Shown here: positions 676 through 63,200 of the stretch, in pieces
Layout of the letters: every line of letters starts with the position of its first letter
How positions within the stretch are numbered: position 1 is the stretch's first letter
Assembly: GCA_024704765.1 (NCBI GenBank)
Contig: JAKMXF010000343.1
Location: 558,001 to 622,000 of the forward strand
Direction of reading: 5' to 3'
Origin: Oopsacas minuta
Taxonomy: Eukaryota > Animalia > Porifera
DNA length: 64,000 bases
The notes under the pieces: generated by a model
What the model saw: only the letters and a program-made list of their open reading frames with translations
Told to the model about the DNA's origin: nothing
The model's database searches: none
Translations under genes and position numbers: made by a program

Positions 676-978
676 CTGTATTTGGGTCAATGTCGGGTAT
701 TACAGCTGTATAGGTCCTATTCATCCCACCACTCTCTGTAACTTCACAGCTGTATGATCCAGGTTGAGTAGTGTAAACTTGTATAGTACTAATTCCTGTA
801 TTAGGATCAGTTGTAGAAGTGAGATCAGTTCTGATACCAGATAGATCTACATAACTCCACATCACTTCTGGTGTGTTCATATTCTCTGTAATACAGTAGA
901 GAGTAGTGTCTGTTGTTAGAATTGTATTGTCTGATAATGCAGAGTATGATGATGCTATTACTTCTCCGAATACGTCCA
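676..978 (-). CDS. Gene A Ig-like exon
   Basis: 303 nt; LYC...VMWSY...GSYSCEV gives the Ig Cys-Trp-Cys pattern. Confidence 0.85.
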
Positions 979-3900
979 CTAAAGGATAACAAGCAATATA
1001 TATAATATAAACGTCCCACGTACATCAAATATTGGCAATTATTCCTTAAACAAGTCTTACAACTTGGACTACATATTCCAAATTTCTGACTATAGAATTA
1101 TTCAAATTACAAAAACACTTACATTTAGTACCACAGAAGTAGCAAGGCAGTATGTCTGTACATGGTGTATCATTCCAAGTGTCTAAAATATTCGTAGTAT
1201 GTACACATTGTTCAGGAGGTCCACCATTGGGCTGACCAGTATCAAATCTCCTGAAATTATTGACAGTACCATCTGCCCAAGTAAATCTCCCGTTAATGTC
1301 TGTCTCCCTCAATCCTATCCAACATTCTATTGAGCCAGTATTTATGCTAAACAACAAGTTATTCTGTTCACTTGATGATATTGTAACTAGGTCATAACCA
1401 CTTGAAACACATTGTAGTCTAGAATCTTCCCAGTCGAGTGAGCCTGTGAAATAATTGATACATGTCCCATCACTTGATATAGCATCACATCCACTTGTAG
1501 GCACTACAATACAAAGAAAGCATGTGAATGCTAAGTATGAGTCTAATATAGTCCGCAAAGATTCAAAATTACGAACAATGTACTCTACCTGTAGTTGGGT
1601 CAGTGTCGGGTATTACAGCTGTATAGGTTTCATTCATCCCTCCACTCTCTGTAACTTCACAGCTGTAGTATCCAGGCTGAGTAGTGTACACTGTCATAGT
1701 ACTAACTCCTGTATTAGGATCAGTTGTAGAAGTGAGATCAGTTCTGATACCAAATAGATCTACATAACTCCACATCACTTCTGGTGTGTTCATATTCTCT
1801 GTAATACAGTAGAGAGTAGTGTCTGACGTTAGAATTGTATTGTCTGATAATGCAGAGTATGTTGATGCTATTACTTCTCCGAATACGTCCACTAAAGCAT
1901 AACAAGCAATATATATATAATACAAACGTCTCACGTACATCATAATTGGCGAGTATTCCGTAAACAAGTATTACATTTCGGGCTACACATTCCAAATTTC
2001 TGACTATCGAATTATTTAAACAAGCAAGCTACGCTTACTTGCGTTTCGTGGCAAGCGAAGTACTCTAGTAAGCGTGCCCATCGTATTCTGTATATTTACA
2101 TTTGAACACATGCATATCAACCATTTACATTTCTCATAATACAGGGCCGTAGCCACTAAAATAAAGCGGTCAGGTTAACTTGACAAACCTGACTGAGTAG
2201 TCAGGTTAATCTAACCAACCTGATTGATTGGTACCATATTGTGGAAATTCAGTAACTAAAAGTGGTCAGGTTGAAACTTGACCAGTGGCTACGGCCCTGT
2301 AATAGCATTACATTGGCCACAAATTCATCATATTATTAAATCTCAGAGATTGTCTGTCTGTCTGTCCGTTGTCAAGAAAAGGATTTACGGTATGCAATTT
2401 TGAAATTATCGCATCACTATGTACGTATTCATCGTGTTTATCAAGGAAGTAAATAGAATTCAATAAAACTAAATTAAATATATCGAACATGCTGAATCCG
2501 ATTTTCACACTTGAGGATTGATCATAAGTAAATATACTGTTGTTTTTATGATTATAAGTAAACAAATTTGAAAATTGAGGTAGAATCAGACTTTCAACGA
2601 CTATACTGGGGTAATCGAGTATGCTGAGTCTGATTATTGTAAACAACATCAATAGTATTTAATCTCAATTGTTGTTTGTCTGATTGTTTGTCCGTTGAAT
2701 ACCTCGAGGCGGAATGCTCCGAGTTCATCATGAAGCGATGAGCCAAAGGCTCGTTAATCATGAATTCCACATAACATAATTAGGTAAACGTTTATGGAAA
2801 TGATCAATGATTTATCTACATAACTTTCACCGCTTGAGTATTTGAACTACTCAATATAAGCCGTAATATAATTTCTACGTACCGTAATTCAATTCACAAA
2901 CCTAGATACAGGTTTAGGAAATTGGCATTTGAATAATTGATACAATAGAGTCTTCAATGTAGTGGGTTACATAACATAGTTACAGGTTTAACAAATTTGA
3001 ATTTGAAAAATGTTGCGCAATTGGAACCATTGCATCCTAATTGGACTGGGTTAGAGCCTATATCATATGATTACTACAATTGGTAAAGTCTCGAATCTGA
3101 AAGGTCAATACATTTTGACACCTATCTCAGAGAGTTTTTGAGGTAGCACTTAGATCTTATAACTTGTTCCTAGATGTATTCCAATCCACATACGTGCCAA
3201 ATTAGAAGTTTGTAGTTATTACCAGTTCCTCAATCAATTCCGAACAAAAAATAAAAAGAACCATCCACAAATGAATATAAAAACACTTACATTTGGTACC
3301 ACAGAAGTAGCAAGGCAATATGTCTGTACATGGTGTATCATTCCAAGTGTCTAAGAAATTCGTAGTATGTACACATTGTTCAGGAGGTCCACCATTGGGC
3401 TGACCAGTATCAAATCTCCTGAAATTATTGACAGTACCATCTGCCCAAGTAAATCTCGCGTTAATGTCTGTCTCCCTCAATCCTATCCAACATTCTATTG
3501 AGCTAGTATTTATGCTAAACAACAAGTTATTCTGTTCACTTGATGATATTGTAACTAGGTCATAACCACTTGAAACACATTGTAGTCTAGAATCTTCCCA
3601 GTCGAGTGAGCCTGTGAAATAATTGATACATGTCCCATCACTTGAAATAGCATCACATCCACTTGTAGGCACTACAATACAAAGAAAGCATGTGAATGGT
3701 AAGTATGAGTCTAATATAGTCCACAAAGATTAAAAATTACGAACAATGTACTCTACCTGTAGTTGGGTCAGTATCGGGTATTACAGCTGTATAGGTTCTA
3801 TTCATCCCTCCACTCTCTGTAACTTCACAGCTATAGTATCCAGGCTGAGTAGTGTACACTTGTATAGTACTAACTCCTGTATTAGGATCAGTTGTAGAAG

Positions 3901-6900
3901 TGAGATCAGTACTGATACCAAATAGATCTACATAACTCCACATCACTTCTGGTGTGTTCATATTCTCTGTAATACAGTAGAGAGTAGTGTCTGATGTTAG
4001 AATTGTATTGTCGGATAATGGTGAGTATGATGATGCTATTACTTCTCCAAACACATTCACTACAGGACAACATACCAAAATGGTATATCAAACCGCATAT
4101 AAACTTATTAATTACTTACACTTAGTTCCACAGAAGTAGCAATTATATGGATCATCGCAGATGCCATCATTCCAAGTTTCAGTGGGCAGATTCCATGTTT
4201 GTACACAGTTTGCAATTGTTCCGCCATTAGGTTCGTTAACATGAAATTGTCTAAACGTACTATTACTACCATCTACCCAAACAAATGTCCCTTCATTCTC
4301 TATATCATTGAGTCCTATCCAACACTGAAATGAAGGACCACTTATAATACTATATAACAATGAATTCTCCTCAGACGATGACACTGAGGCTAAGTCGTAG
4401 CCTCTTGAAAGACACTGTAGTCTAGATTCTTCCCAGCTAATAATACCAGAACTTGTCCAATATGTGAAACATGTCCCTTCAGTTGATATTGCATCACAGC
4501 CGGTTGTAGGCACTACAATACGTATTTATAATGAGAGGATCAATTTTATTGGTCATATCCTGTATACATACATATATATGATTAAACCTCGTAAAAATAA
4601 GAAAGACTATAGCAAGAACTAATACAGTCAACATAACGTAACTCGAGCCCTCATAGAAATCAAAGTATTATCGCGATAGCGGATAAGGAGCACAAATATT
4701 GGAGGTCCCTGGTGTACGTATTAACGAGAACCTATTGGAAAATGTAATGTAATTTACCTGGATTTGGATTCGCGTCAAATATTACAGCTGTATAAGTTCT
4801 ATTCATCCCTCCATTCTCTGTAACTTCACAGCTGTATGATCCTGGCTGATTAGTGTAAACTTGTATAGTACTAACTCCTGTATTAGGATCAGTTGTAGAA
4901 GTGAGATCAGTACTGATACCAAATAGATCTACATAACTCCACATCACTTCTGGTGTGTTCATATTCTCTGTAACACAGTAGAGAGTAGTGTTTGATGTTA
5001 GAATTGTATTGTCTGATAATGGTGAGTATGATGATGCTATTACTTCTCCAAACACATTCACTACAGGACAACATACCAAAATGGTATATCAAACCGCATA
5101 TAAACTTATTAATTACTTACACTTAGTTCCACAGAAGTAGCAATTATATGGATCATCGCAGATGCCATCATTCCAAGTTTCAGTGGGCAGATTCCATGTT
5201 TGTACACAGTTTGCAATTGTTCCGCCATTAGGTTCGTTAACATGAAATTGTCTAAACGTACTATTACTACCATCTACCCAAACAAATGTCCCTTCGTTCT
5301 CTATATCATTGAGTCCTATCCAACACTGAAATGAAGGACCACTTATAATACTATATAACAATGAATTCTCCTCAGACGATGACACTGAGGCTAAGTCGTA
5401 GCCTCTTGAAAGACACTGTAGTCTAGATTCTTCCCAGCTAATAATACCAGAACTTGTCCAATATGTGAAACATGTCCCTTCAGTTGATATTGCATCACAG
5501 CCGGTTGTAGGCACTACAATACGTATTTATAATGAGAGGATCAATTTTATTGGTCATATCCTGTATACATACATATATATGATTAAACCTCGTAAAAATA
5601 AGAAAGACTATAGCAAGAACTAATACAGTCAACATAACGTAACTCGAGCCCTCATAGAAATCAAAGTATTATCGCGATAGCGGATAAGGAGCACAAATAT
5701 TGGAGGTCCCTGGTGTACGTATTAACGAGAACCTATTGGAAAATGTAATGTAATTTACCTGGATTTGGATTCGCGTCAAATATTACAGCTGTATAAGTTC
5801 TATTCATCCCTCCATTCTCTGTAACTTCACAGCTGTATGATCCTGGCTGATTAGTGTAAACTTGTATAGTACTAACTCCTGTATTAGGATCAGTTGTAGA
5901 AGTGAGATCAGTACTGATACCAAATAGATCTACATAACTCCACATCACTTCTGGTGTGTTCATATTCTCTGTAACACAGTAGAGAGTAGTGTTTGATGTT
6001 AGAATTGTATTGTCTGATAATGGTGAGTATGATGATGCTATTACTTCTCCAAACACATTCACTACAGGACAACATACCAAAATGGTATATCAAACCGCAT
6101 ATAAACTTATTAATTACTTACACTTAGTTCCACAGAAGTAGCAATTATATGGATCATCGCAGATGCCATCATTCCAAGTTTCAGTGGGCAGATTCCATGT
6201 TTGTACACAGTTTGCAATTGTTCCGCCATTAGGTTCGTTAACATGAAATTGTCTAAACGTACTATTACTACCATCTACCCAAACAAATGTCCCTTCATTC
6301 TCTATATCATTGAGTCCTATCCAACACTGAAATGAAGGACCACTTATAATACTATATAACAATGAATTCTCCTCAGACGATGACACTGAGGCTAAGTCGT
6401 AGCCTCTTGAAAGACACTGTAGTCTAGATTCTTCCCAGCTAATAATACCAGAACTTGTCCAATATGTGAAACATGTCCTTTCAGTTGATATTGCATCACA
6501 GCCGGTTGTAGGCACTACAATACGTATTTATAATGAGAGGATCAATTTTATTGGTCATATCCTGTATACATACATATATATGATTAAACCTCATAAAAAT
6601 AAGAAAGACTATAGCGGGAACTAATACAGTCAACATGCCGTAACTCGAGCCCTCATAGAAATCAAAGTATTATCGCGATAGCGGATAAGGAGCACAAATA
6701 TTGGAGGTCCCTGGTGTACGTATTAACGAGAACCTATTGGAAAATGTTATGTAATTTACCTGAATTTGGATTTGCGTCAAATATTACAGCTGTATAAGTT
6801 CTACTCATCCCTCCACTCTCTGTAACTTCACAGCTGTATGATCCTGGCTGATTAGTGTAAACTTGTATAGTGCTAATTCCTGTATTAGGATCAGTTGTAG

Positions 6901-9900
6901 AAGTGAGATCAGTACTGATACCAAATAGATCTACATAACTCCACATCACTTCTGGTGTGTTCATATTCTCTGTAACACAGTAGAGAGTAGTGTTTGATGT
7001 TAGAATTGTATTGTCTGATAATGGTGAGTATGATGATGCTATTACTTCTCCAAACACATTCACTAAAGGATAACATACCAAAGGATAAGTCCACCTGATA
7101 TGATACAACTTTGTTGTAAGCAGCAAGAAGATACAAATATATTTCATGTAATATTATTTCAGGGAAATACAATATATTCCTAATCCCAGTTAACAATCAA
7201 TTTTGTATGTAGTTCATGCTACTAGAGGTCACAAGTCCGAGCAGGAGCCACTCTTGTCAGGTTAAATCGGCCATCAAATTTGAAATAATTTAATCCATTC
7301 CTTTACGTGATAAATATCATGACTGATATTATTATACTGAATGATAGGATCAATACACATATTAATTTTAGAAATATACTAAACCTTGTTGGTTTATGCG
7401 TCATGTTGGGCTGGCTAGTGCCGATAAACTCCGCATGTATGTACTCTACTTACTATACACTGTCCAACAAAAATAAATATATAATATTGTATACAGGGCC
7501 GCTCCCAGGAATCTTTAGTGGGGTGTGAGCAAAGGAAGATTTGGGGCAAAGTCTCCAACAAATTTTTTGATAAATACTGTGAAAAAATTTTCAATACAAA
7601 TGTCGACTTAACCTGAAGATATTATCTATTGAGCTCAAAAGGACGGATTATTTGAAGTATACTTCGAAACGAATAGCGACTGGCTAAAGGGTCGTGACTG
7701 GGGATAATTCCTCCAGTATTAAATCACTAATTTCTCTTCTGAACAATTCAAATATACAAATATAAGCATTTACCTTTAATGCTACAGAAATAGCAACTCA
7801 GAGTATGTCCTATACATTGATGATCATTCCAGCGACTATTCGTTCTAAATTCTACACAGTTATATATCGATCCGGGATCATGGGGCTCATTAGTATCAAA
7901 ATTTCTATACGTACTATCACTGCCATCTACCCAAACAAATGTCCCTTCATTAGCTATATCATTGAGTCCTATCCAACAAGTACTAGTTCCTGTAAGTAGG
8001 CTTAACGACAGTGCATTCTCTTCAGATGATGATATTGTAGCTAGGTCGTAACCGCTCGAAAGACACTGTTGTCTAGAATCTACCCAGTTAATAGGAGAGC
8101 TTTGGAAATACCTGAAACATGTACCTTCATTTGATATTGCACCACATCCACTTGAAGGAACTACAATACAGAGGACATAAGATTGATACCATATCGATAT
8201 CGGTTAAAATTATCCGATACGATACATATCTGTACTATTTTTATGAAAATAGAAAACATATCGAAATATCTGATATATCTAAACTATCGGAAGTATCAGT
8301 AAATTGTCGAATATTGGAAAATATTGGAAATATCAGAAATATACTTTGGGAATTTTGTTCAGTAAGGACCATTTGAACACTATATCAATCTGTCTTGTTT
8401 AAGAAATATACCAATATGTTGTTGTAACGAAATTGAATACGTATTTTACACCATAATCCACATAGAAATTGAGGCAAACATATCTTGTAGCTGTTGCAGA
8501 GGTGAACCTCTTGCCACTGACAAAATTTGAAATATTTCATTTCGAATATTGAATAGGCTCCGTAGTCATTTGGTGCATATCATATATGGAAAGGGAGGTA
8601 TATCAATATTATTCAATGTCGATTGTTGTTTGTTTGTTTGTTTGTCGGTTGTCAAGGAAAGGATATAAGGCATGCAATTTTGAAATTGTCGCATAACTAT
8701 GTATTTTGGTATTGTAAACAACATCAATAGTATTAAATCTCAGTTGTTGTCTGTCCGTTGATATCGATATATATTGTTTTATGAATAGGATTGGTCTAAA
8801 CGGTTACCCAGGGGTAACTAAGTACACTGAATTCGAAATTCGCAATTTCAAGGTTCTAATATGAAAATGTATTGTTGAATATATAGGAAAAAATTAGCAA
8901 AATCTCAAAACGTAGATACTTGCTCTCATCGGCTATAATGGGGGTTGAAATCAAAATCTGATCGAGATAGCCGGATAGGGAGTACGAATATTGGATGTCC
9001 TCTGGTGTACGTATTAACGAAAGTCTATTGTAAAAAGGAATGGAATTTACCTGGATTTGGATTTAAGTCAAATATTACAGCTGTATAGGTCCCAACTACC
9101 CCTCCATCCTCAGTGACTTCACAGCTGTATGATCCAGGCTGAGTAGTGTACACTTGTATAGTACTAACTCCTGTAGTAGGATCAGTTGTAGAAGTGAGAT
9201 CAGTTCTGATACCAGATAGATCTACATAACTCCACATCACTTCTGGTGTGTTCATATTCTCTGTAACACAGTAGAGTGTAGTGTCTGATGTTAGAATTGA
9301 ATTGTCTGATAATGCAGAGTATGTTGAGCCAGTAACTTCTCCAAACACATTCACTAAAGGATAACATACCAAAGGGATAAGTCCACCTGATACGATACAA
9401 CTTTGTTGTATGCAACAAGAAATGTACATACATTTATGTAACAAAATTTCAGGAAAATACAATATTTTCCTAATTCCATGAAACAATGAATGTTGCATGC
9501 AATTCATGCTACTAGAGATCACAAGTCCGAGCCCGAGGCACTTTTGTCAGGATATACCGGCCATCAAATATGAAATAATGTAATTTATTCCTTTACTTAA
9601 TTCATTAGTATCAAGAACTATCTGATTAATAAATTTATTCATTTTAGAAATATACTAAACCTTATTGGTTTTATGCGTTATGTTGGGCTGGCTCGTGCCG
9701 ATAAACTCCCTCTGTTCATCCTCTACTTACAATACACGGTCCAACAAAATTAAATATATAATAATGTATGCAGGGCCGCTTCAAGAAATCTTTAGTGCGG
9801 TGTGCGAGCAAAGGAACATTTAGGGCAAAGTTTCCAACAAATTTTATGACAAATATTGTGGAATAATTTTCGAAATAAATATCGACTTAAACTGAAGATA

Positions 9901-11930
9901 TTATCTATGAACTCAAAAGGACGGATTATTTGAAGTATACTTCGAAACGAATAGCGACTGGCTAAAGGGTCGTGATTGGGGATAATTCCTCCAGTATTAA
10001 ATCACTAATTTCTGTGTTGAGAAATTCAAATATACAAATATAATCATTTACCTTTAATGCTACAGAAATAGCAAGCCAGAGTCTGTCCTATACATTGATG
10101 ATCATTCCAGCGACCACTCGATCTTGTGTGTACACAGCTTTCTGACGATCCACCATTGGGCTCATTAGTATCAAAATTTCTATACGTACTATCACTGCCA
10201 TCTACCCAAACAAATGTCCCCTCATTATCTATATCATTGAGTCCTATCCAACAATCAGTAGTTCCTGTAACTAGGCTTAACCACAGTGCATTCTCTTCAG
10301 ATGATGATATTGTAGCTAGGTCGTAACCGCTCGAAAGACACTGTTGTCTAGAATCTACCCAGTTAATAGGAGAGCTTTGGAAATACCTGAAACATGTACC
10401 TTCATTTGATATTCCACCACATCCACTTGAAGGAACTACAATACAGAGGATATAAGATTGATAACATATCGATATCGGTTAAAATTATCCGATACGATAC
10501 ATATCTGTACGATTTTTATGAAAATAGAAACACATCGAAATATCTGATATATCTAAACTATCGGAAGTATCAGTAAATTGTCGAATATTGGAAAATATTG
10601 GAATATCAGAAATATACTTTGGGAATTTCGTTCAGTAAGGACCATTTGAACACTATATCAATCTGTCTTGTTTAAGAAATATACCAATATGTTGTTGTAA
10701 CTAATTGAATACGTATTTTACACCATAATCCACATAGAAATTGAGGCAATCTTGTAGCCATTGCAGAGGTGAACCTCTTGCCACTGACAAAATTTGAAAT
10801 ATTTCATTTCGAATATTGAATAGGCTCCGTAGTCATTTGGTGCATATCATATATGGAAGGGAGATATATCAATATTATTCAATGTCGATTGTTGTTTGTT
10901 TGTTTGTTTGTCGGTTGTCAAGGAAAGGATATAAGGCATGCAATTTTGAAATTGTCGCATAACTATGTATTTTGGTATTGTAAACAACATCAATAGTATT
11001 AAATCTCAGTTGTTGTTTGTTTGTTTGTTTGTCCGTTGATATCTATTTATATTGTTTTATGAATAGGCTTGCTCTAAACGGTTACCCAGGGGGTAACTAA
11101 GTATACTGAATCCGGGATTCGCATTTTCAAGGTTCTCATATATGAAGTTATAGTTGTTTCTATGAATTTATAAAGGAAATACAAAGTTGAATCCTAAAAT
11201 ATAATTATAGACTTGCTCTTAACGGCTATAGGTGGCTATCAAAGGATGCTGAATTCTAATTTTGCATATTCAAGTTTATCTTAAATTCTTTGTGTTTTTA
11301 TGACTATAAAGTAAACAAATAGTTGAAATATTTATTTATTAATTCAATTTTGCATTTTATACTTTACTAAATTTGAGGCATAAAGTGCCAAGTCACTACC
11401 TGTTCGAAAGCCGCGGAGCGCGAGCAAGCTAAGCTGCTCGTAATTCAGGGCTGTATCAATTCATATTGAGTTGACATAATAAGCTAATTTTCTTGAATGA
11501 ATTGAATGAGTTGAAAGAGTTTACAACACTAATTAGGCCAGGAGGTATTAAAAGTAGGTACATTATCTGTTCTAAGAATTGGAAATCATCTAAGGAAATA
11601 ATGTACAATGTATACATTACTTCAGTCGTAACAGCAATGCATCAGTTATAAAGTTAGAAACTCAATATTTCGAATTTAACACTCGGTTATTAAATGAGTT
11701 GGTAAAATAAACACAGAATTTTGAATGAGATTAATGGGTTGGTGAAAGAAAAGTAAACGAGTTGGAAGACAAATATTGAGGTTTTTGCCAACTCAAAATG
11801 AGTTGATACAGCACTGCCGGGCTCGTATACATAATAATTATCAAATGAACACAATATACTTACCTTGTGAGTAGACTAGCGTGTGCAACTGAAGTGCCAA
11901 TATCGATAAAATGAAATATAGATGCTTCAT
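676..11930 (-). CDS. Receptor gene A (multi-exon): SP-(CTL-Ig)x>=7, 3' end beyond left edge
   Basis: 15 exons with GT-AG ends, all phase 1, no stops found; the intron at 1-675 is the reverse complement of the gene B intron preceding a CTL exon, so the gene continues off-window. Confidence 0.85.
1123..1503 (-). CDS. Gene A C-type lectin exon (QPN class)
   Basis: 381 nt; CWIGL, GQPN, WND, conserved Cys. Confidence 0.9.
1589..1891 (-). CDS. Gene A Ig-like exon
   Basis: 303 nt, AG/GT bounded. Confidence 0.85.
2142..2299. mobile_element. 158-bp MITE (second copy 53403..53560)
   Basis: 16-bp TIR cagggccgtagccact/agtggctacggccctg, internal caggtt repeats. Confidence 0.75.
2334..2756 (+). mobile_element. 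Non-autonomous Helitron-like dispersed repeat (copy at about 53595..54015)
   Basis: aaatctca...(ctgt/gttt)n-ccgttg 5' motif; 3' hairpin gagcc-aaa-ggctc followed by gt; boundaries approximate. Confidence 0.5.
3291..3671 (-). CDS. Gene A C-type lectin exon (QPN class)
   Basis: 381 nt; WIGL/QPN/WND. Confidence 0.9.
3757..4059 (-). CDS. Gene A Ig-like exon
   Basis: 303 nt, AG/GT bounded. Confidence 0.85.
4120..4512 (-). CDS. Gene A C-type lectin exon (EPN class)
   Basis: 393 nt; CWIGL, NEPN, WND. Confidence 0.9.
4758..5060 (-). CDS. Gene A Ig-like exon
   Basis: 303 nt. Confidence 0.85.
5121..5513 (-). CDS. Gene A C-type lectin exon (EPN class)
   Basis: 393 nt, copy of 4120..4512. Confidence 0.9.
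5759..6061 (-). CDS. Gene A Ig-like exon
   Basis: 303 nt. Confidence 0.85.
6122..6514 (-). CDS. Gene A C-type lectin exon (EPN class)
   Basis: 393 nt; one G>R change versus sister copies. Confidence 0.9.
6760..7062 (-). CDS. Gene A Ig-like exon
   Basis: 303 nt. Confidence 0.85.
7774..8160 (-). CDS. Gene A C-type lectin exon (EPH loop; not in ORF track)
   Basis: Hand-translated 387 nt open: VPSSGCGAISNEGTCFRYF...CWIGL...NEPHDPGSIYNCVEFRTNSRWNDHQC. Confidence 0.88.
9051..9353 (-). CDS. Gene A Ig-like exon
   Basis: 303 nt. Confidence 0.85.
10052..10435 (-). CDS. Gene A first C-type lectin exon (EPN loop; not in ORF track)
   Basis: Hand-translated 384 nt open: ...CWIGL...NEPNGGSSESCVHTRSSGRWNDHQC. 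Confidence 0.88.
11446..11816. mobile_element. MITE in intron 1 (copy 58428..58789; one-ended copy from 26020)
   Basis: TIR cagggctgtatcaattcat/atgagttgatacagcactg; no TSD found. Confidence 0.6.
11864..11930 (-). CDS. Gene A signal-peptide exon
   Basis: MKHLYFILSILALQLHTLVYSQ+G then gtaagt donor, phase 1. Confidence 0.85.
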
Positions 11931-11934
11931 ATTA

Positions 11935-12060
11935 TGCGGTTTGAATTGCATCACACACTAAACCATTACTTAAATAGCTGTCCTCCTCCTCCTCCTGAAT
12001 TTGTAATTGGATCCTCTCTTTGTAGAAATCTTTTGCCGTAGGTATTTTTGCTCAATCTCA
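11935..12060 (-). promoter_or_regulatory. Putative core promoter of gene A
   Basis: TATTTAAG about 40 nt upstream of ATG, (GGA)5, CCAAT; homologous to B and C promoters. Confidence 0.5.
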
Positions 12061-25900: not shown

Positions 25901-25905
25901 GTAAT

Positions 25906-49882: not shown

Positions 49883-50514
49883 TCAGGTAGAGTAGTCGTT
49901 AGGAGAAGAAGCTTCCAAAGGAGGTTTTTCTATTGAAAGGTCAACTTTTTTCTCAGGCGAATATGCAAGATTTATGTTCACATCTTGGTTATAAGTTTCA
50001 TTCCCGCGTGCTGGAAGATCAAAAAGCTGAGGATTAGTCTGAGACTTCACTGATTTTTTCAAAGAGTTCCTCTTCATAAAAAAGCAAACAACTACTGCAA
50101 TCACTAAAATCAGCAGCAGTAGAATTATAATAATGACTACCCCCACCACTATGACGTAAAAGACTGGATTAGTCGTAGGAATTATTACATTGCTGTCTGT
50201 AGATTGAGTGATGTTATTAGTTGGAGTTGCGATTGGTTCGCGGAAGTGATAAGTAGTTGCTGAAACATTTTCTGTTGAGAATGGGATCTGAAATTCTACT
50301 CGAATTGTGTAATTTACATTTCCTTGTAGATTAGTTATTTCGTAATGGTGAAATAGTGTTGTACCAACGAGAAATTCATAATCTTCTAATCCCAAATATA
50401 TTGAGAATATTACATCAGTATAACTAGCATTAGATTCTGATAACTCCCAAAATACGAGTACTGAACTTTCCCCGGAAGATTCTGCTCTTAAATTAATGAT
50501 ACTTTGTGTAGATT
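49883..50514 (-). CDS. Gene C FN3+TM+tail exon
   Basis: 632 nt, homologous to 33870..34501. Confidence 0.85.
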
Positions 50515-53500: not shown

Positions 53501-56500
53501 TGTGGAAATTCAGTAACTAAAAGTGGTCAGGTTGAAACTTGACCAGTGGCTACGGCCCTGTAATAGCATTACATTGGCCACAAATTCATCAGATTATTAA
53601 ACCTCAGAGATTGTCTGTCTGTCTGTCCGTTGTCAAGAAAAGGATTTACGGTATGCAATTTTGAAATTATCGCATCACTATGTATGTATTCATCGTGTTT
53701 ATCAAGGAAGTAAATAGAATTCAATAAAACTAAATTAAATATATCGAACATGCTGAATCCGATTTTCACACTTGAGGATTAATCATATGTAAATATACTG
53801 TTGTTTTTATGAATATAAGTAAACAAATTTGAAAATTGAGGTAGAATCAGACTTTCAACGACTATACTGGGGTAATCGAGTGTGCTGAGTCAGATTATTG
53901 TAAACAACATTAATAGTACTTAATCTCAATTGTTATTTGTCTGTTTGTTTGTTCGTTGAATACCTCGAGGCGGAATGTGCCAAGTTCATCATGAAGCGAT
54001 GAGCCAAAGGCTCGTTAATCATGAATTCCACATAATATACTTAGGTACAGTTTATGGAAATGATCAATAAGTTATCTACATGACTTTCACCGCTTGTGTA
54101 TTTGAACTACTCAATATAAGCCGTAATATAATTTCTACGTACCGTAATTCAATTCACAAACCTAGATACAGGTTTAAGAAATTGGCATTTGAATAATTGA
54201 TACAATAGAGTCCTCAATGTAGTGGCTTACATAACATAGTTACAGGTTTAACAAATTTGAATTTGAAAAATGTTGCGCAATTGGAACCATTTGCATCCTA
54301 ATTGGACTGGGTTAGAGCCTATATCATATGATTACTACAATTGGTAAATTCTCGAATCTGAAAGGTCAATACATTTTGACACCTATCTCAGAGAGTTTTT
54401 GAGGTAGCACTTAGATCTTATAACTTGTTCCTAGATGTATTCCATTCCACACACGTGCCAAATTCGAAGTTTGTAGTCATTACCAGATCCTTAATCAATT
54501 CCGAACAAAATATAAAAAAACCATCCACAAATGAATATAAAAACACTTACATTTGGTACCACAGAAGTAGCAAGGCAGTATGTCTGTACATGGTGTATCA
54601 TTCCAAGTGTCTAGAATATTCGTAGTATGTACACACTGTTCAGGAGGTCCACCATTGGGCTGACCGGTATCAAATCTCCTGAAGTTATTGACAGTACCAT
54701 CTGCCCAAGTAAATCTCCCGTTAATGTCTGTCTCCCTCAGTCCTATCCAACATTCTATTGAGCTAGTATTTATGCTAAACAACAAGTTATTCTGTTTACT
54801 TGATGATATTGTAACTAGGTCGTAACCACTTGAAACACATTGTAGTCTAGAATCTTCCCAGTTGAGTGAGCCTGTGAAATAATTGATACATGTCCCATCA
54901 CTTGATATAGCATCACATCCACTTGTAGGCACTACAATACAAAGAAAGCATGTGAATGGGAAGCATAATGAGAAATCATAAAGTGTACTGTATCACCAGT
55001 AATCTAATTACCTGTATTTGGGTCAGTATCAGGTATTACAGCTGTATAGGTTCTATTCATCCCTCCACTCTCTGTAACTTCACAGCTGTATGATCCTGGC
55101 TGATTAGTGTAAACTTGTATAGTACTAACTCCTGTATTAGGATCAGTTGTAGAAGTGAGATCAGTACTGATACCAAATAGATTTACATAACTCCACATCA
55201 CTTCTGGTGTGTTCATATTCTCGGTAACACAGTAGAGAGTAGTGTTTGATGTTAGAATTGTATTGTCTGATAATGGTGAGTATGTTGATGCTATTACTTC
55301 TCCAAACACATTCACTACAGGATAACATATCAAAATGGTATATCAAACTGCATGTAAACTTATTAATTACTTACACTTAGTTCCACAGAAGTAGCAATAA
55401 TATGGATCATCACAGATGCCATCATTCCAACTTTCAGCGGCCAGATCCCATGTTTGTACACAGTTTGCAATTGTTCCGCCATTAGGTTCGTTAACATGAA
55501 ATTGTCTAAACGTGCTATTACTACCATCTACCCAAACAAATGTCCCTTCATTCTCTATATCATTGAGTCCTATCCAACACTGAAATGAAGGACCACTTAT
55601 AATACTATATAACAATGAATTCTCCTCAGACGATGACACTGAAGCTAAGTCGTAGCCTCTTGAAAGACACTGTAGTCTAGATTCTTCCCAGCTAATAATA
55701 CCAGAACTTGTCCAATATGTGAAACATGTCCCTTCAGTTGATATTGGATCACAGCCGGTTGTAGGCACTACAATACGTATTTATAATGAGAGGATCAATT
55801 TTATTGGTCATATCCTGTATACGTACATATATATGGTAAATCTCATAAAATACGAAGAAAGACAATGGCAATAACTAATACTGTCAACATGCCGCAACTC
55901 GAGTCCTCATAGAAATCAAAATATTATCGCGATAACGGATAAGGAGCACAAATATTGGAGGTTCCTGGTGTACGTATCAGCGAGAGTCTATTGGAAAATG
56001 TAATGTAATTTACCTGGATTTGGATTTGCGTCAAATATTACAGCTGTATAAGTTCTATTCATCCCTCCACTCTCTGTAACTTCACAGCTGTATGATCCTG
56101 GCTGATTAGTGTAAACTTGTATAGTACTAACTCCTGTATTAGGATCAGTTGTAGAAGTGAGATCAGTACTGATACCAAATAGATTTACATAACTCCACAT
56201 CACTTCTGGTGTGTTCATATTCTCGGTAACACAGTAGAGAGTAGTGTTTGATGTTAGAATTGTATTGTCTGATAATGGTGAGTATGTTGATGCTATTACT
56301 TCTCCAAACACATTCACTACAGAATAACATATCAAAGGATAAGTCCACCTGATATGATACAACTTTGTTGTAAGCAGCAAGAAGATACAAATATATTTCA
56401 TGTAATATTATTTCAGGAAAATACAATATATTCCTAATTCCAGTCAACAATGAATTTTGTATGTAATTCATGCTACTAGAGGTCACAAGTCCCAGCAGGA

Positions 56501-58903
56501 GACACTCTTGTCAGGTTAAATCGGCCATCAAATTTGAAATAATTTAATCCATTCCTTTACGTGATAAATATCATCACTGATATAGTGATATTATTATACT
56601 GAATGATGGGATCAATACATATATGAATTTTAGAAATATGCTAAACCTTGTTGGTTTATGCGTCATGTTGGGCTGGGTCGTGTCGATAAACTCCGCATGT
56701 ATGTACTCTACTACTATACACTGTCCAACAAAAATAAATATATAATATTGTATGTAGGGCCGCTCCCAGGACTCTTTAGTGGGGTGTGAGCAAAGGAAGA
56801 TTTGGGACAAAGTCTCCAACAAATTTTTGAAATACTGTGAAAAAATTTTCAATATAAATGTCGACTTAAACTGATGATGTCATCTATTGAGCTCAAAAGT
56901 ATGGATTATTTGAAGTATAATTCGAAACGAATAGCGACTGGCTAAAAGGTCGTGGCTAGGGATAATTCCTTCAGTATTAAATCACTAATTTCTTTTCTGA
57001 GAAATTCAAATATACAAATATGATCATTTACCTTTAATGCCACAGAAATAGCAAGTAGATATCTGTGTCATACATTGAGCATCATTCCATTGACCATTCG
57101 ACCATATAATTTCTATACAGTGTTCCGTCGATCCACCATTATTGGGCTCACCATTACCAAAATTTCTATACGTACTATCACTTCCATCTACCCAAACAAA
57201 TGTTCCTTCATTATCTATATCATTGAGTCCTATCCAACAATGAGTAGTTCCTGTATTTAGGCCTAACGCCAGTGTATTCTCTGCAGATGATGATATTGTA
57301 GCTAGGTCATAACCGATCGAAAGACACTGTTGTCTAGAATCTACCCAGGAAATTTGAGAGCCTCGGAAATACCTGAAACACGTACCTTCATTTGATATTG
57401 CATCACATCCACTTGAAGGAACTACAATATAGAGGACATAAGATTGATAACATATCGATATCGGCTAAAATTATCCGATGCGATACATATCTGTACGATT
57501 ATATGAAAATAGAAAACATATCGATATATCTGATATATCTAAAATATCGGAAGTATCAGTAAATTATCGAATATTTGTAAATATTGCAAATATCAGAAAT
57601 ATACTTTGGTAATTTCGTTCAGTAAGGATCATTTGAAGACTATATCAATCTGTCTTGTTTAAGAAATATACCAATATGTTGTTGTAACGAAATTGAATAC
57701 GTATTTTACACCATAATCCACATAGAAATTGAGGCAAACATATCTTGTAGCTGTTGCAGAGGTGAATCTCTTGCCAGTGAGAAAATTTGAAATATTTCAA
57801 TTCGAATATTGAATAGGCTCCGTAGTCATTTGGTGCATATCATATATGGAAAGGGAGGTATATCAATATTATTCAATCTCAATTGTTGTTTGTTTGTTTG
57901 TTTGTCGGTTGTCAAGGAAAGGATATAAGGTATGCCATTTTGAAATTGTCGCATAACTATGTATTTTGGTATTGTAAACAACATCAATAGTATTAAATCT
58001 CAATTGTTGTCTGTCCGTTGATATCGATATATATTGTTTTATGAATAGGATTGCTCTAAACGGTTACCCAGGGGGTAACTAAGTATACTGAATCCGTGAT
58101 TCGCATTTTCAAGGTTCTCATATATGAAGTTATAGTTGTTTCTATGAATTTATAAAGGAAATACAAAGTTGAATCTTAAAATATAATTATAGACTTGCTC
58201 TTAACGGCTATAGATGGGTATCAAAGGATGCTGGATTCTAATTTTGCATATTCAAGTTTATCTTAAATTCTTTGTGTTTTTATGACTATAAAGTAAACAA
58301 ATAGTTGAAATATTTATTTATTAATTCAATTTTGCATTTTATACTTTACTAAATTTGAGGCATAAAGTGCCAAGTCACTACCTGTTCGAAAGCCGCGGAG
58401 CGCGAGCAAGCTAAGCTGCTCGTAATTCAGGGCTGTATCAATTCATATTGAGTTGGCAAAATAAACGAATTTTCTTGAATGAATTGAAAGAGTTTACAAC
58501 ACTAATTAAGCCAGAAGGTATAAAAAGTAGGTACATTATATGTTCTAAGAATTGGAAATCATCTAAGGAAATGATGTAACAATGTAGACATTGCTTCAGT
58601 CGTAACAGCAATGCATCAGTTATAAAGTTAGAAACTCAATATTTCGAATTTAACTCTTGGTTATAAAATGAATTGGGAAAATAAACTCATAATTTGGAAT
58701 GAGATTATTGGGTTGGTGAAAGAAAAGTAAACGAGTTGAAAGACAAATATTGAGGTTTTGCCAACTCAAAATGAGTTGATACAGCACTGCCTGACTCGTA
58801 TACATAATAATTATCAAATGAACACAATATACTTACCTTGTGAGTAGACTAGCGTGTGCAACTGAAGCACCAATATCGATAAAATGAAATATAGATGCTT
58901 CAT
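49883..58903 (-). CDS. Receptor gene C (12 exons): SP-(CTL-Ig)4-Ig-Ig-FN3-TM, premature TAA in exon 9
   Basis: Exons sum to 3990 nt in frame; TAA at 52019-52021. Confidence 0.8.
51080..51355 (-). CDS. Gene C Ig-like exon (DEGLY)
   Basis: 276 nt open. Confidence 0.75.
51613..51870 (-). CDS. Gene C divergent Ig-like exon
   Basis: 258 nt open. Confidence 0.65.
51940..52242 (-). CDS. Gene C Ig-like exon with in-frame stop
   Basis: CAA CCT GGA TAA TAC AGC TGT; splice sites intact. Confidence 0.8.
52387..52767 (-). CDS. Gene C C-type lectin exon (QPN)
   Basis: 381 nt. Confidence 0.9.
52853..53155 (-). CDS. Gene C Ig-like exon
   Basis: 303 nt. Confidence 0.85.
54551..54931 (-). CDS. Gene C C-type lectin exon (QPN)
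   Basis: 381 nt. Confidence 0.9.
55012..55314 (-). CDS. Gene C Ig-like exon
   Basis: 303 nt. Confidence 0.85.
55375..55767 (-). CDS. Gene C C-type lectin exon (EPN)
   Basis: 393 nt; WDLAAESWND. Confidence 0.9.
56014..56316 (-). CDS. Gene C Ig-like exon
   Basis: 303 nt. Confidence 0.85.
57032..57421 (-). CDS. Gene C first C-type lectin exon (EPNN loop; not in ORF track)
   Basis: Hand-translated 390 nt open: ...CWIGL...GEPNNGGSTEHCIEIIWSNGQWNDAQC. Confidence 0.88.
58837..58903 (-). CDS. Gene C signal-peptide exon
   Basis: MKHLYFILSILVLQLHTLVYSQ+G, gtaagt. Confidence 0.85.
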
Positions 58904-58909
58904 ATTACC

Positions 58910-59060
58910 CGGTATTAATTGCATCACACACTAAACCATTACTTATATAGCGGTCCTCCTCCTCCTGAATTTGTAACTAGACCCTCTCTTTTTGAAATCT
59001 TTTGCCGTAGGTATTTTTGCTCAATCTCAACCTGCTGTACTTTTTGCAGTAAGTAATTTA
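58910..59060 (-). promoter_or_regulatory. Putative core promoter of gene C
   Basis: TATATAAG and (GGA)4 retained; CCAAT changed to CTAGT. Confidence 0.5.
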
Positions 59061-59934
59061 TTACAGATGTATAAAGTTAAGTTAAATCCCTCATCTGCTA
59101 ATTAGGATCCTCCTTGATGAGGATGTTTGCCGAAGACATTCACTAAAGCTGTTCAATATGTCTGTAAGCTATTTCCACATTGCTAGTCTAACACAGTACA
59201 TAACTAATTAGTTACATTACGAATGTTTCAATAATATTTTTGCTGACGGCATTTTTGATTCATTTGGTCCTGAAATAAGATATACAATTAAATTGAGTTA
59301 CATGTTTGTGAGTGTGGTAGACAGGTATGCACCAAATCATAAGCTTAATGCTTTACCCAAGACTTATTTTCAAGTTTCCAATGGCTGGTATTTAGTCTAA
59401 CATACAAGTGATGGATACAGAAAATTGCATCGTGTTATTCGTGTTTGTAAATATGGTGGGCTTTACATTTACTATGAATGGACAAGACGGTCAATTCTGA
59501 ACTTGGATTTCTGTCACGAATTGATGAACTTCAAGCACTTTCAAGCAATACTATCCTTGTATACTTGTACTTGGTCAGGACTCATAAACTCTTATTCATA
59601 ATATACTCACGTTGGTTCTCGAAGTAATACAATATGCCGTTTACATATATGTAAAAAATGTTTATTGCTTTCCAAAAAGTATGGCAAAAGGGCTTTCCAG
59701 TTATTTCACGAGAATATAATAACCGTCATTTTGTTAATGACACTACGTAATTATACCAAAACTTAGAATGGTGAGACTAGTTTAATCAAATTACAAGATA
59801 TAACTAATGAGCATGAATAATATCAAGCTAATCTACACGGAAATCTAATAAACTGAGGCTATCTAAATCTAAGGCTAACTATCTCAATGAAATCTAACGG
59901 ACACATTATAATCTACGAATATTAAAATGTAAGA

Positions 59935-60225
59935 GGCTTTGGCTCGTCGCTTCATGATGATGACGGCGTATTGCGCCTCGAGGTATTCAACGGACAAACA
60001 AACAGACAAACAACTACTGAGATTCTATAATATTGATGTTGTTTACAATAATCAGACTCAGCATACTCAATTACCCCAGTATAGTCGTTGAAAGTATGAT
60101 TCTACCACCTCAATTTTGAAATTTGTTTACTTTATATTCATAAGAACAACAATAAATTTACATATGAGAAACTTGAAATGCGAATTTCTGGCTCAGCGTA
60201 CTTAATTACCCTTGGATAGCCGTTT
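59935..60225 (-). mobile_element. Helitron-like repeat truncated at the copy D junction (homologues about 12961..13310, 24580..24891, 37365..37800)
   Basis: gagcc-aaa-ggctc-type hairpin end (gaggctttggctc in this copy), (aaac)n; sequence breaks at gccgttt. Confidence 0.55.
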
Positions 60226-63200
60226 TGGAATATGTAACCTAAATTTTAAGACTTGTTTAAGGAATAATTGCCAATATTTGATGTACGTGAGACGTTTGTA
60301 TTATATATATTGCTTGTTATCCTTTAGTGGACGTATTCGGAGAAGTAATAGCATCAACTTACTCTGCATTATCAGACAATACAATTCTAACATCAGACAC
60401 TACTCTCTACTGTATTACAAAGAATATGAACACACCAGAAGTGATGTGGAGTTATGTAGATCTATCTGGAATCAGAACTGATCTCACTTCTACAACTGAT
60501 CCTAATACAGGAATTAGTACTATACAAGTGTACACTACTCAACCTGGATAATACAGCTGTGAAGTTACAGAGAGTGGAGGGACGAGTAGAACTTATACAG
60601 TTGGGTTATTCTCGCCAAATTTTTATACAGGTAGACTCCGACATACCATAGCAAAGTATAATAATCTTGTATGAATATGATTTTGTATTTTTCTCATAGA
60701 AGCTGTAGCGAATAGCTATTACAATTACACGATTGGGATAGATAATGAAGATATCTATCTTTTCTATTCACCAGCTGATAACTCAGTACAACTTACTGAT
60801 ATTCACTGGATGATTCAAGGTCTACCAGGAATTTTGGCCAATCCACTTAACATTTACTCTCTGGCGTCTTATATCGGAGATATGAACGTTATCACCCTGA
60901 ACTGTTATGATATCGAATCTGGAAATATTTTGGTCAGTGTTGCACTCTCCGTTCAAAGTTAGTTAGATCATTAGCCTAATTCAGTGGAACCTCGTAAATA
61001 CGAACACCAACGGACTGTCAAATCCTGTTCGCCTTTGTATTAGCCGGAGTAATACCATTTGAATATCCATTGTAGGTACATTAATTTGTGTAATAATTTG
61101 TCTGTCTTAGCCGAATCTCGTATTCACCATATTTGTATTATCGAGTTTGCACTGTATGTATATTAGAATCATCAGTTGTATGATATTGTCTAATTGTATA
61201 ATTATGCTCATTAGGTCAACCTCTAATTCAACTGGGCAACCAAATAATCACCGCTTTCCCTCTTCTGCCTCCTGATGTCAACAGAGCAGATTTTACTATA
61301 CTGTCTGAGGATGTAGTTCTGAGTACAAACCTGGTAGGGAGATGGCGGAGACCAAACAGTGATAATGACACACAGAGCTATATCACTTTCGATATTTTCC
61401 AGCAATCTGACGAAGGACTGTACAGGTTCTATGTTACTAATTGGGAAGGAATAGAGACACTGGCTATACAGATATACATTACAGCTGTTGGTAAGATATC
61501 TATAGGTTCTAGAATTTAATACAATACATCATATCTAATCTACTGCGAGTCAAAACGTCTACAAAGGCCACGGATGGATTTCCTCGACAAAATAATTGGA
61601 TAAAAGTCATTCCACCATTGCCAATAACACTCTAAACTCCACATCACATCAACCCCGAGCGGTCAGAATGTGCGAACAATATTGTTCTAGTGCAAAAAGC
61701 AATCTGCTTTGATTAGTGAAATACTTTTCTACATTACTATTAGTATAGGAATTAGGAGTACACGTACTCAGTAGATTTGGATATAATCAGGGCCTTCAGA
61801 AGCCCATGGCTAGTGAGACGGCTATCGGCTATGCTGACTCATGGTAAATCGAACTAGAATTGTTTCATGAAAAATAGGGCAGCCAAGGTTACCCAAGCCC
61901 TATTTTGAAGACCTGTATACAATTAAGTATTTTGGGACATTTTAACACATTTCCCACAGGTTGTGTTTTGGGAAATGTTCTATTCGGCCCTGTTCGTAAC
62001 TTCTGATTAATGAGGGTCTACTGTATTCTATTTTACAATTATTTATTTATTTAGAATCTACACAAAGTATCATTAATTTAAGAGCAGAATCTTCCGGGGA
62101 AAGTTCAGTACTCGTATTTTGGGAGTTATCAGAATCTAATGCTAGTTATACTGATGTAATATTCTCAATATATTTGGGATTAGAAGATTATGAATTTCTC
62201 GTTGGTACAACACTATTTCACCATTACGAAATAACTAATCTACAAGGAAATGTAAATTACACAATTCGAGTAGAATTTCAGATCCCATTCTCAACAGAAA
62301 ATGTTTCAGCAACTACTTATCACTTCCGCGAACCAATCGCAACTCCAACTAATAACATCACTCAATCTACAGACAGCAATGTAATAATTCCTACGACTAA
62401 TCCAGTCTTTTACGTCATAGTGGTGGGGGTAGTCATTATTATAATTCTACTGCTGCTGATTTTAGTGATTGCAGTAGTTGTTTGCTTTTTTATGAAGAGG
62501 AACTCTTTGAAAAAATCAGTGAAGTCTCAGACTAATCCTCAGCTTTTTGATCTTCCAGCACGCGGGAATGAAACTTATAACCAAGATGTGAACATAAATC
62601 TTGCATATTCGCCTGAGAAAAAAGTTGACCTTTCAATAGAAAAACCTCCTTTGGAAGCTTCTTCTCCTAACGACTACTCTACCTGAGAATATTTATCGTA
62701 ATTATTGTGTGAAAATACTTTACGAACTAAACATAAGTATACTATTCTTAGATTATAGTGTGTGCATTAGATTTCACTGAGATAGATAGATGCAGATATT
62801 AGATTTTCTTAGTGTATTAGATTTGTGAAGATTATCTTGATTTTTCTTGTTTGAGTTATGTATCTTGTTATTTGATTAAATTCGTTCCCCCTTCGTAGTC
62901 ATTTTAATTAATTCAATAACTTCCCTGGTCCAGGCACCATTTCCACATAATTTGAAATTGATTGGACAATTGTCATCTAATATATATCCCTTAATAATAG
63001 AGTTGTCTTGAGTTGTAATTTATGTCAAAACACGTAAAACATAGATTTGATAATTCAAATGCTCGATATTTTAGGCAAAATACACATTGTGGATTTCCCA
63101 TGTAGTTATTGATATTTCTGAATCGGAGTACACTCTTTGATATATTTGATATTCATAATCCTGAATACAATAAACATATTTTGAAAAGTGAAATACATCG

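Follow-up and report, generated by a model that had tools for sequence, protein, structure and literature searches.

A gene cluster in the glass sponge Oopsacas minuta encodes type I membrane proteins with alternating C-type lectin and immunoglobulin domains

What kind of surface protein does a glass sponge build by setting C-type lectin (CTL) and immunoglobulin (Ig) domains in strict alternation, and what might such a protein recognize? The question is raised by a 64,000-nucleotide stretch of Oopsacas minuta DNA (assembly GCA_024704765.1, contig JAKMXF010000343.1, positions 558,001 to 622,000 of the forward strand), hereafter the window, whose first letter is position 1. The window has 35% G+C and exon-intron structure of the typical eukaryotic kind; it holds three paralogous genes, A (minus strand), B (plus strand) and C (minus strand), together with D, a truncated and inverted copy of the 3' end of C. 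This cluster consists of paralogous genes encoding type I membrane proteins. Their common layout is a signal peptide, n CTL-Ig pairs, two Ig-like domains, a fibronectin type III (FN3)-like module, a membrane span and a 63-residue tail, with the exons that follow the pairs (X, Y and the last exon) read in B and C; n is at least 7 in A, which is cut by the left edge of the window, 3 in B and 4 in C.

Used as tblastn queries, the open frames of one gene map 14 CTL and 15 Ig blocks in strict alternation, and find exon X and the last exon three times each. We set exon borders by local alignment and a search for AG/GT and frame, a step that also placed the three Y exons. The exons are of uniform design: CTL exons measure 381-393 nt, Ig exons 303 nt, X 258 nt and Y 276 nt, all divisible by three, with AG/GT borders throughout and introns all in phase 1 (exons phase 1-1). 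A signal exon (MKHLYFILSIL[AV]LQLHTLVYSQ followed by gt, a phase-1 donor) lies about 1.4 kb 5' of the first CTL exon in A, B and C. After splicing, A is open for at least 1633 aa, B gives a complete frame of 1095 aa, and C a frame of 1329 aa with one in-frame stop. The parts of gene B are as follows.

25885-34501, plus strand: gene B, all of its 10 exons present; it encodes 1095 aa if read from the ATG at 25906 and 1102 aa if read from that at 25885
25906-25972, plus strand: signal-peptide exon MKHLYFILSILVLQLHTLVYSQ, phase-1 donor; resembles the N-terminus of the O. minuta paralogue P0101
27402-27782, plus strand: CTL1, class delta, EPS...WND (Pfam and exon mapping)
27957-28259, plus strand: Ig1; an RNA contig joins its end (FDSNPNP) to CTL2
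29138-29521, plus strand: CTL2, class alpha, QPD...WND, galactose type (602-nt RNA contig, no mismatch)
30237-30539, plus strand: Ig2 (RNA joints 29521/30237 and 30539/31533)
31533-31913, plus strand: CTL3, class gamma, QPN...WND (RNA and exon mapping)
32058-32360, plus strand: Ig3 (RNA joints 31913/32058 and 32360/32432)
32432-32689, plus strand: exon X, predicted Ig-like, without the first core cysteine (RNA, paralogue model)
32949-33224, plus strand: exon Y, predicted Ig-like, no cysteines (RNA, paralogue model)
33870-34501, plus strand: last exon, with predicted FN3-like module, Thr/Asn-rich linker, membrane span (residues 1006-1032) and 63-aa tail holding NETY and NLAY (RNA)

Automatic GenBank models already cover all three genes; they were located in the gene tables around the transporter genes described below, a word-based search with the paralogue P0002 having returned none of the window's own genes. 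The model of A has 2209 aa and starts at window position 11951; that of B has 1102 aa and starts at 25885, being the spliced 1095-aa frame plus seven residues. The model of C ends at 49883 and has 1318 aa, 18 residues below the straight model, probably because the stop is stepped around.

Gene B is transcribed and spliced from Ig1 to its end. Four public runs from one sample were available; three cover introns and exons alike and are DNA, while coverage in the fourth, X4, falls to near zero in long introns, so that X4 behaves as RNA. Contigs from X4 give GT..AG joints in B at 29521/30237, 30539/31533, 31913/32058, 32360/32432, 32689/32949 and 33224/33870, and a single 602-nt contig links the end of Ig1, CTL2 and Ig2, with no mismatch in the gene-specific CTL2. 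These joints match the model. For gene C, X4 holds a fraction of 0.40 of the sampled words from its gene-specific first CTL exon, a weak sign that C is transcribed too.

The CTL exons belong to the C-type lectin-like domain (CTLD) superfamily. The five that were scanned match Pfam Lectin_C with 54-64 bits (cut-off 22.6; E about 1e-14 to 1e-17), and B CTL2 matches the carbohydrate-recognition domains (CRDs) of DEC-205, PLA2R, Endo180, MRC1, DC-SIGN and CD23 with E values down to 1e-35. Their translations contain the four core cysteines, the N-terminal pair of the long form and WIGL (GC...TCF, QQC, CWIGL, NC/SC, WND..C, CYFC). The CTL-associated Ig exon likewise belongs to its superfamily, that of the immunoglobulins (IgSF): Pfam matches are weak (E about 5e-3, below threshold), the exons hold an invariant pattern of Cys28, Trp40 and Tyr75-x-Cys77, and the first domain of the stalk model described below (predicted local distance difference test, pLDDT, 83-92) aligns to Ig chains.

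Closer to the membrane, Pfam is silent or sub-threshold: it recognizes nothing in exons X and Y, and its fn3 profile scores E 0.01 and 16.5 bits (cut-off 25) on the last ectodomain module. The identity of these modules rests on an AlphaFold2 (AF2) model of a paralogue and its fold matches, which support X and Y as Ig-like and the last ectodomain module as FN3-like. We modelled Ig-X-Y-FN3 of P0004, a 565-aa O. minuta paralogue 66-76% identical to the window exons, from an alignment of 31 rows that included those exons. The model has a mean pLDDT of 80 and four beta-sandwich domains, and its best full-length fold matches are Robo2, NCAM2 Ig-FN3, PTP-delta Ig-Fn, neurofascin, contactin, borderless/turtle and protogenin; the FN3-like module, matched as part of the whole stalk, is a beta-sandwich at the position where Ig-FN3 proteins carry FN3. 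In other paralogues exon X has a Cys...Trp...Cys pattern, of which the window genes replace the first cysteine with Tyr.

The last exon also encodes the 27-residue membrane span together with the 63-residue tail. A tail motif, NETY, is common to the window genes, P0004, P0001/P0101 and P0176 (as NAIY in P0176), and another, N[LIM]AY, to the window genes, P0004 and P0176, and is also found in P0064. With low confidence, we read both as possible NxxY-type sorting or phosphotyrosine sites. The tail of the window genes has no consensus for an immunoreceptor tyrosine-based activation or inhibition motif (ITAM or ITIM).

The lectin heads fall into four classes: alpha (A1, A2, B2, C1), beta (A3-A5, C2), gamma (A6, A7, B3, C3, C4) and delta (B1). 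Identity between classes is 42-56%, and the classes follow the same distal-to-proximal order in all genes. Gene A, with the longest array, reads as follows.

676-11951, minus strand: gene A, whole visible part, cut by the left window edge (spliced frame and GenBank model)
11864-11930, minus strand: A signal exon; upstream ATG at 11951
10052-10435, minus strand: CTL-alpha (A1)
9051-9353, minus strand: Ig after A1
7774-8160, minus strand: CTL-alpha (A2)
6760-7062, minus strand: Ig after A2
6122-6514, minus strand: CTL-beta (A3)
5759-6061, minus strand: Ig after A3
5121-5513, minus strand: CTL-beta (A4)
4758-5060, minus strand: Ig after A4
4120-4512, minus strand: CTL-beta (A5)
3757-4059, minus strand: Ig after A5
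3291-3671, minus strand: CTL-gamma (A6)
1589-1891, minus strand: Ig after A6
1123-1503, minus strand: CTL-gamma (A7)
676-978, minus strand: Ig after A7
4100-7100, minus strand: three tandem 1001-bp units (self-comparison)

Window positions 1-675, to the left of the last visible Ig exon of A, are 88-93% identical to 30540-31110, in the B intron between Ig2 and CTL3; gene A thus probably extends past the window by at least one further CTL-gamma/Ig pair.

Taken together, the exon mapping, open frames and RNA joints in B bear out the architecture proposed in a first-pass annotation of this DNA, namely a signal peptide, (CTL-Ig)n, Ig-Ig-FN3-like and a membrane span. Its counts of CTL-Ig pairs (at least seven in A, three in B, four in C) and its truncated copy are likewise recovered by exon mapping, and the stalk that it read as Ig-Ig-FN3-like-TM (TM, transmembrane) is supported by the P0004 model and its fold matches. 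It had asked for spliced transcripts, which the RNA contigs provide for B from Ig1 to the last exon. The shared exons are there as well, the signal exon in A, B and C and the stalk exons in B, C and D. Three points are corrected: the CTL classes, which do differ as it said, number four; the last Ig exon of C and that of D each contain an in-frame stop; and D is a near-identical inverted duplicate of the 3' end of C.

Among CTLDs, the triplet EPN is associated with sugars of the mannose type and QPD with those of the galactose type. Here the sugar-site triplet is EPN in A1, C1 and class beta, EPH in A2, QPD in B2, QPN in class gamma and EPS in delta, and every class keeps WND. Classes alpha and gamma can be seen to have WIGL, WND and the cysteines of the long form, with an acidic residue standing two places ahead of the third cysteine. 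The set of features expected of calcium-dependent sugar-binding CRDs (an EPN or QPD triplet, that acidic residue and WND) is complete in A1, B2, C1 and class gamma (with QPN).

The classes also evolve differently. Pairwise ratios of nonsynonymous to synonymous divergence (dN/dS) are 1.2-4.0 for CTL alpha, in all six pairs, against 0.04-0.2 for gamma, 0-0.6 for beta and about 0.45 for Ig exons; class gamma, the Ig exons and the stalk exons are under purifying selection. Within class alpha, both rates peak in the EPN...WND half, where the binding loops lie: it has dN 0.29 and dS 0.17 (dN/dS about 1.7), and the N-terminal half dN 0.08 and dS 0.06 (about 1.3). In a codon bootstrap of the whole alpha domain, dN-dS is at or below zero in 3.6% of replicates.

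How does the array change? Within gene A the tandem units are spaced 1001 nt start-to-start three times and are 96-100% identical; each unit pairs a CTL-beta exon with an Ig exon, the two being separated by an intron of 60 nt and followed by one of 245 nt, and dS among the three CTL-beta exons of A is 0-0.012. Across the cluster, mean dS is 0.18 for Ig exons and 0.6-1.2 for CTL classes. The Ig exons are mosaics: their 5' third sorts with the class of the CTL before it (identity 0.956 inside groups and 0.906 between them, permutation p 0.0005), their 3' third with the element after it (0.954 and 0.802, p 0.0005), and their middle third is 96-99% identical across all copies. The same pattern is present at codons for the same residue, that is, at silent sites, and so does not reflect protein-level co-adaptation alone. 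Intron lengths also go with class: alpha exons are preceded by introns of about 880 nt and followed by introns of 700-715 nt; for beta the two figures are 245 and 60 nt, and for gamma they are 80-85 nt and either 144 or about 1397 nt. The pattern suggests recombination within Ig exons that shuffles CTL cassettes. The unit of exchange would begin in the 3' part of one Ig exon and run through a CTL exon, with the introns on both sides of it, into the 5' part of the following Ig exon; the near-invariant core of the Ig exon could supply the homology needed for unequal crossing-over and gene conversion, and the outcome would be an altered number and order of lectin heads.

Gene C and the truncated copy D lie at the right of the window.

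49883-58924, minus strand: gene C, 12 exons (spliced frame)
58837-58903, minus strand: C signal exon; upstream ATG at 58924
57032-57421, minus strand: CTL-alpha (C1)
56014-56316, minus strand: Ig after C1
55375-55767, minus strand: CTL-beta (C2)
55012-55314, minus strand: Ig after C2
54551-54931, minus strand: CTL-gamma (C3)
52853-53155, minus strand: Ig after C3
52387-52767, minus strand: CTL-gamma (C4)
51940-52242, minus strand: fourth Ig of C, stop-bearing
52019-52021, minus strand: in-frame stop in the fourth Ig exon of C (spliced codon 915), immediately preceding the conserved Y-S-C
51613-51870, minus strand: C exon X
51080-51355, minus strand: C exon Y
49883-50514, minus strand: C last exon
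60328-62686, plus strand: truncated copy D, no signal exon, no CTL exon
60328-60630, plus strand: D Ig, with the same stop as C, at 60549-60551
60700-60957, plus strand: D exon X
61215-61490, plus strand: D exon Y
62055-62686, plus strand: D last exon
48569-52347: left arm of an inverted repeat; right arm 60223-64000, up to the window edge

D is 99.7% identical to the 3' end of C, inverted, with 13 mismatches and one indel in 3775 nt. Twelve of the 13 mismatches fall within 430 nt beside the breakpoint, and the differences stop near the 3' boundary of the Ig exon, a placement in line with cassette shuffling. Such clustering at one end argues against a simple fold-back artefact, and we rejected such an artefact as sole explanation for D.

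Where else do these modules occur? A profile search with the Ig exons retrieved only 100 proteins among 1.84 billion representatives. Strong multi-domain matches (P0001-P0004, P0064) came from O. minuta in every case; the remaining multi-domain matches that were checked are weak (E 1e-5 or worse) and are Ig proteins of other animals, and no cnidarian was among the matches checked from this search. The automatic names on O. minuta matches include 'Macrophage mannose receptor 1', 'Low affinity immunoglobulin epsilon Fc receptor' and 'Lactose-binding lectin l-2-like'. Alternating CTL-Ig arrays are present at further O. minuta loci too. With home-made profiles of the five modules, the architectures of the paralogues read as follows.

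P0101 and P0176: (CTL-Ig)3-4, then (X-Y-Ig)n
P0177: (CTL-Ig)4, then domains outside the five profiles
P0002 and P0102: SRCR-CTL-CTL-... (SRCR by Pfam for P0002)
P0004: CTL-Ig-X-Y-F
P0003 and the receptor phosphatase P0064: (Ig-X-Y)n-F
P0180, P0184 and P0225: (CTL-CTL-Ig-X-Y)n with phosphatase domains (Pfam)

P0064, P0180, P0184 and P0225 are receptor-type tyrosine phosphatases with ectodomains made of the same Ig, X and Y modules, and of CTL in three of them. Judged by their predicted domains, the CTL-bearing P0180, P0184 and P0225 amount to lectin-headed receptor phosphatases in a sponge. That sister genes join the same ectodomain modules to tyrosine phosphatases suggests a route into signalling.

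Outside this genome, a locus in ENA assembly ERZ25072730 (contig ctg83236_294x_l, L002:10001-18400; 36% G+C) has the order CTL, Ig, Y, Ig, X, Y, FN3/TM and about 50-60% protein identity to the window exons, and so probably comes from another glass sponge. Beyond sponges, similarity is confined to the CTL domains of mannose-receptor-like proteins. In the ESM Atlas a (CTL-Ig)3 segment found no close look-alike, the best score being 0.84 and the hits CTL-only or Ig-only clusters. A word-based protein search with one CTL exon returned single-exon ENA open reading frames (ORFs) only, and no lectin of the glass sponge Aphrocallistes vastus.

We favour, as the probable though far from assured reading, that the cluster encodes multivalent membrane glycan receptors that diversify by shuffling of CTL cassettes. 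Exposed on the sponge surface, the proteins would bind glycans multivalently and in a calcium-dependent way. Differences among the triplets (EPN, QPD, QPN, EPS, EPH) could give one chain several sugar specificities, with Ig spacers keeping the lectin heads apart like beads on a string, and NxxY-type tail motifs might link binding to uptake or signalling. The most probable ligands would be glycans of bacteria or of other foreign particles captured or sorted by this filter-feeding animal.

Several points weigh against this reading. The glycan-receptor function of the A, B and C proteins is something that we infer, and the tail motifs are short and could be due to chance. The sugar-site set is incomplete in A2 (EPH, no Glu), class beta (EPN, Ala for Glu) and delta (EPS); with the acidic residue before the third cysteine absent in some CTL copies, calcium and sugar binding may be lost there. 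Diversifying selection on the distal class, alpha, is suggestive only, since its four sequences also exchange sequence by conversion, and a codon bootstrap of the loop half alone gives dN-dS at or below zero in 7.8% of replicates. The Ig mosaic could partly reflect co-adaptation of domain linkers. As for the gene models, the RNA joints of B start at Ig1, the signal-CTL1 and CTL1-Ig1 joints coming from the sequence model; C, with its premature stop, may be a pseudogene; and the copy number of the identical 1001-bp units in A may be mis-assembled.

What else could these proteins be? An adhesion or aggregation receptor, whose lectin heads on the sponge's own surface glycans, or whose homophilic Ig chain, would hold syncytial tissue and cells together, is a serious candidate that we nevertheless consider rather unlikely. 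In fold, the stalk is matched best by cell-adhesion molecules and by type IIa receptor phosphatases, some paralogues built from these ectodomain modules bear tyrosine-phosphatase domains, in a layout typical of cell-contact signalling, and B CTL2 has a galactose-type QPD site; such a receptor would resemble Ig-family cell-adhesion molecules (IgCAMs) and the calcium-dependent C-type lectin of A. vastus, a proposed aggregation factor. Adhesion, however, leads one to expect conservation, yet the distal CTL class has dN/dS above 1 and both head number and sugar motifs vary among paralogues, and the A. vastus lectin, at about 22 kDa, has one CTL. A bolder idea, which we think unlikely, is that germline cassette-shuffling, with the Ig core as a recombination linker through which lectin cassettes can be duplicated, lost or reordered, makes arrays differ among individuals of this syncytial sponge and serves self/non-self discrimination or the choice of symbionts. 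If true, an animal lineage that branched off among the earliest would have a lectin-based equivalent of such polymorphic systems as Alr and FREPs.

That polymorphic lectin-Ig arrays are outright allorecognition determinants, separating own tissue from that of another individual in the manner of the Hydractinia Alr genes, seems to us quite improbable. Clustered paralogues, recent duplications, cassette structure and distal-domain dN/dS above 1 would all suit it, as would an Ig/Ig/FN3-like/TM stalk followed by tyrosine motifs, given that Alr proteins have Ig domains without the core disulfide and an Fn3-like stalk (PMC9546547). But no sequence relation to Alr is detectable in the sponge proteins, as the strong multi-domain matches of the Ig profile are from O. 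minuta and none of the matches checked is cnidarian; Alr proteins are without CTL (PMC9546547), and the sponge tail is without an ITAM or ITIM consensus. The known sponge candidates for allorecognition, the aggregation factors, are moreover a different family. Least probable of all, and in our view highly improbable, is that the locus is mostly non-functional DNA, a decaying or mis-assembled repeat whose genes are annotation artefacts. It has in its favour the in-frame stop in C and D, the lack of a 5' end in D and its near-perfect inverted copy running to the window edge, and three 1001-bp units alike enough to be miscounted. Yet 41 exons across A, B, C and D keep intact splice sites and phase, and the frame is open over 1095 aa in B and over at least 1633 aa in A; the RNA contigs show B spliced as modelled, the gamma, Ig and stalk exons are under purifying selection, and the 13 differences between C and D are distributed unlike those of a fold-back artefact.

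The receptor genes are surrounded by other duplicated elements. Two intronless ORFs for 526-aa amino-acid transporters (Aa_trans), at 16181-17761 (plus strand) and 42578-44158 (minus strand), sit in a 99% identical inverted repeat with arms 15285-17844 and 42495-45054; GenBank covers only the last 341 residues of each, and the Pfam match spans residues 12-445 of the long ORF. An exact look-up of the full 526 residues drew a blank on account of this shorter annotation, whereas the 341-residue protein is found on contig JAKMXF010000343.1. Remnants of mariner-type transposases (Pfam Transposase_1) at 14275-14604 (minus strand) and 45746-46222 (plus strand) lie within duplicated intergenic segments and are listed in GenBank as genes of 109 and 158 aa. 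Repeated ORF-bearing elements flank the receptor genes in inverted orientation (36109-36486, plus strand, and 47814-48282, minus strand; 18810-19424, minus strand, and 40846-41435, plus strand), and are likely to be old transposon fragments that take part in segmental duplications. Between B and the second transporter copy, 37240-37539 is 75% identical to a conserved region upstream of A and C (12848-13147 and 59817-60116) and may be a relic of the 5' end of another gene.

How glass sponges recognize microbes, food and foreign tissue is little known, and this locus offers a concrete, testable receptor family. Its putative ligand-contacting domains bear signs of diversifying selection, and its exon design would ease change in the number and order of domains. 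The first-pass annotation had described an expanding, variable glycan-recognition family, which fits the differing sugar motifs, the alpha dN/dS above 1, the triplicated 1001-bp unit and the mosaic Ig exons; the innate immune, symbiont or allorecognition role that it attached to this family is conjectural. It also knew of no described receptor of this kind. As far as the literature goes this stands: our search for hexactinellid or Oopsacas proteins with C-type lectin and immunoglobulin domains found no description of this CTL-Ig family, and the genome papers of O. minuta and A. vastus make no mention of lectins. In databases, however, the automatic GenBank models exist, and arrays occur at other O. 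minuta loci. We therefore regard the architecture as a new variant among multi-lectin receptors and Ig-lectin fusions, present in public annotation and, so far as we found, in no published description.

How does it compare with known systems? Sponge aggregation factors carry Calx-beta and Wreath domains; Calx-beta had no match in Pfam scans of the exons, and Wreath is not in Pfam. The only characterised hexactinellid lectin, that of A. vastus (AvL), is a calcium-dependent, galactose-binding C-type lectin and proposed membrane aggregation factor (PMC4557014). Compared by description only, AvL consists of one CTL, has a calculated mass of about 22 kDa and begins with a hydrophobic N-terminus; it lacks Ig domains, a stalk and a C-terminal span. 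IgCAMs and type IIa phosphatases (NCAM, Robo, DCC, PTP-delta/LAR) are the top fold matches and share the stalk in which a chain of Ig domains is followed by an FN3-like one; in contrast to them, the window genes have lectin heads, a short tail and no catalytic domain. True receptor phosphatases with Ig-X-Y modules are encoded by O. minuta as well.

Molluscan CREPs, so far as is known, are small proteins that are secreted and carry one or two Ig domains at the N-terminus and one CTL at the C-terminus. These CREPs and the Ig-CTL lectins of crustaceans, among them Procambarus PcLec3 with 252 residues, one Ig and one CTL (PMC4944128), show that IgSF and C-type lectin domains can share one immune-linked invertebrate protein (PMC5433772, PMC4944128). 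These proteins are without repeated alternation, stalk or membrane span, whereas the sponge proteins have from three to at least seven CTL-Ig pairs and a span. Hydractinia Alr proteins are single-pass products of clustered paralogues; their Ig domains are unusual, some being without the core disulfide, the domain next to the membrane is Fn3-like, and the tail carries tyrosine motifs. Their N-terminal domain is a V-set, they have no CTL, and C-type lectins are never mentioned in the Alr paper (PMC9546547). The N-terminal domain of the sponge proteins is a CTL, there is no detectable sequence relation, and no ITAM or ITIM is present in the tail. The resemblance to Alr proposed at first thus holds for the generic Ig/Fn3-like/TM layout and not beyond it, Alr being without CTL and no cnidarian relative having been found.

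The mannose receptor family (MRC1, PLA2R1, DEC-205/LY75, Endo180/MRC2) also consists of type I proteins with many CTLs per chain and a short tail with tyrosine-based motifs; its CRDs are the best sequence matches of B CTL2 among solved structures, and the GenBank automatic names of O. minuta paralogues derive from it. Unlike its members, the sponge proteins have no N-terminal ricin B cysteine-rich or FNII domain: Pfam scans of exons and paralogues gave no Ricin_B_lectin and no fn2, and in the sequence model the signal exon splices in phase straight to CTL1. Instead of the eight to ten contiguous CTLDs of the mannose receptor, each sponge CTL is followed by an Ig domain, the chain ends in a membrane-adjacent Ig-Ig-FN3-like stalk, and the family is lineage-specific. 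A mannose-receptor-like multi-lectin layout thus occurs in a sponge, made from different building blocks.

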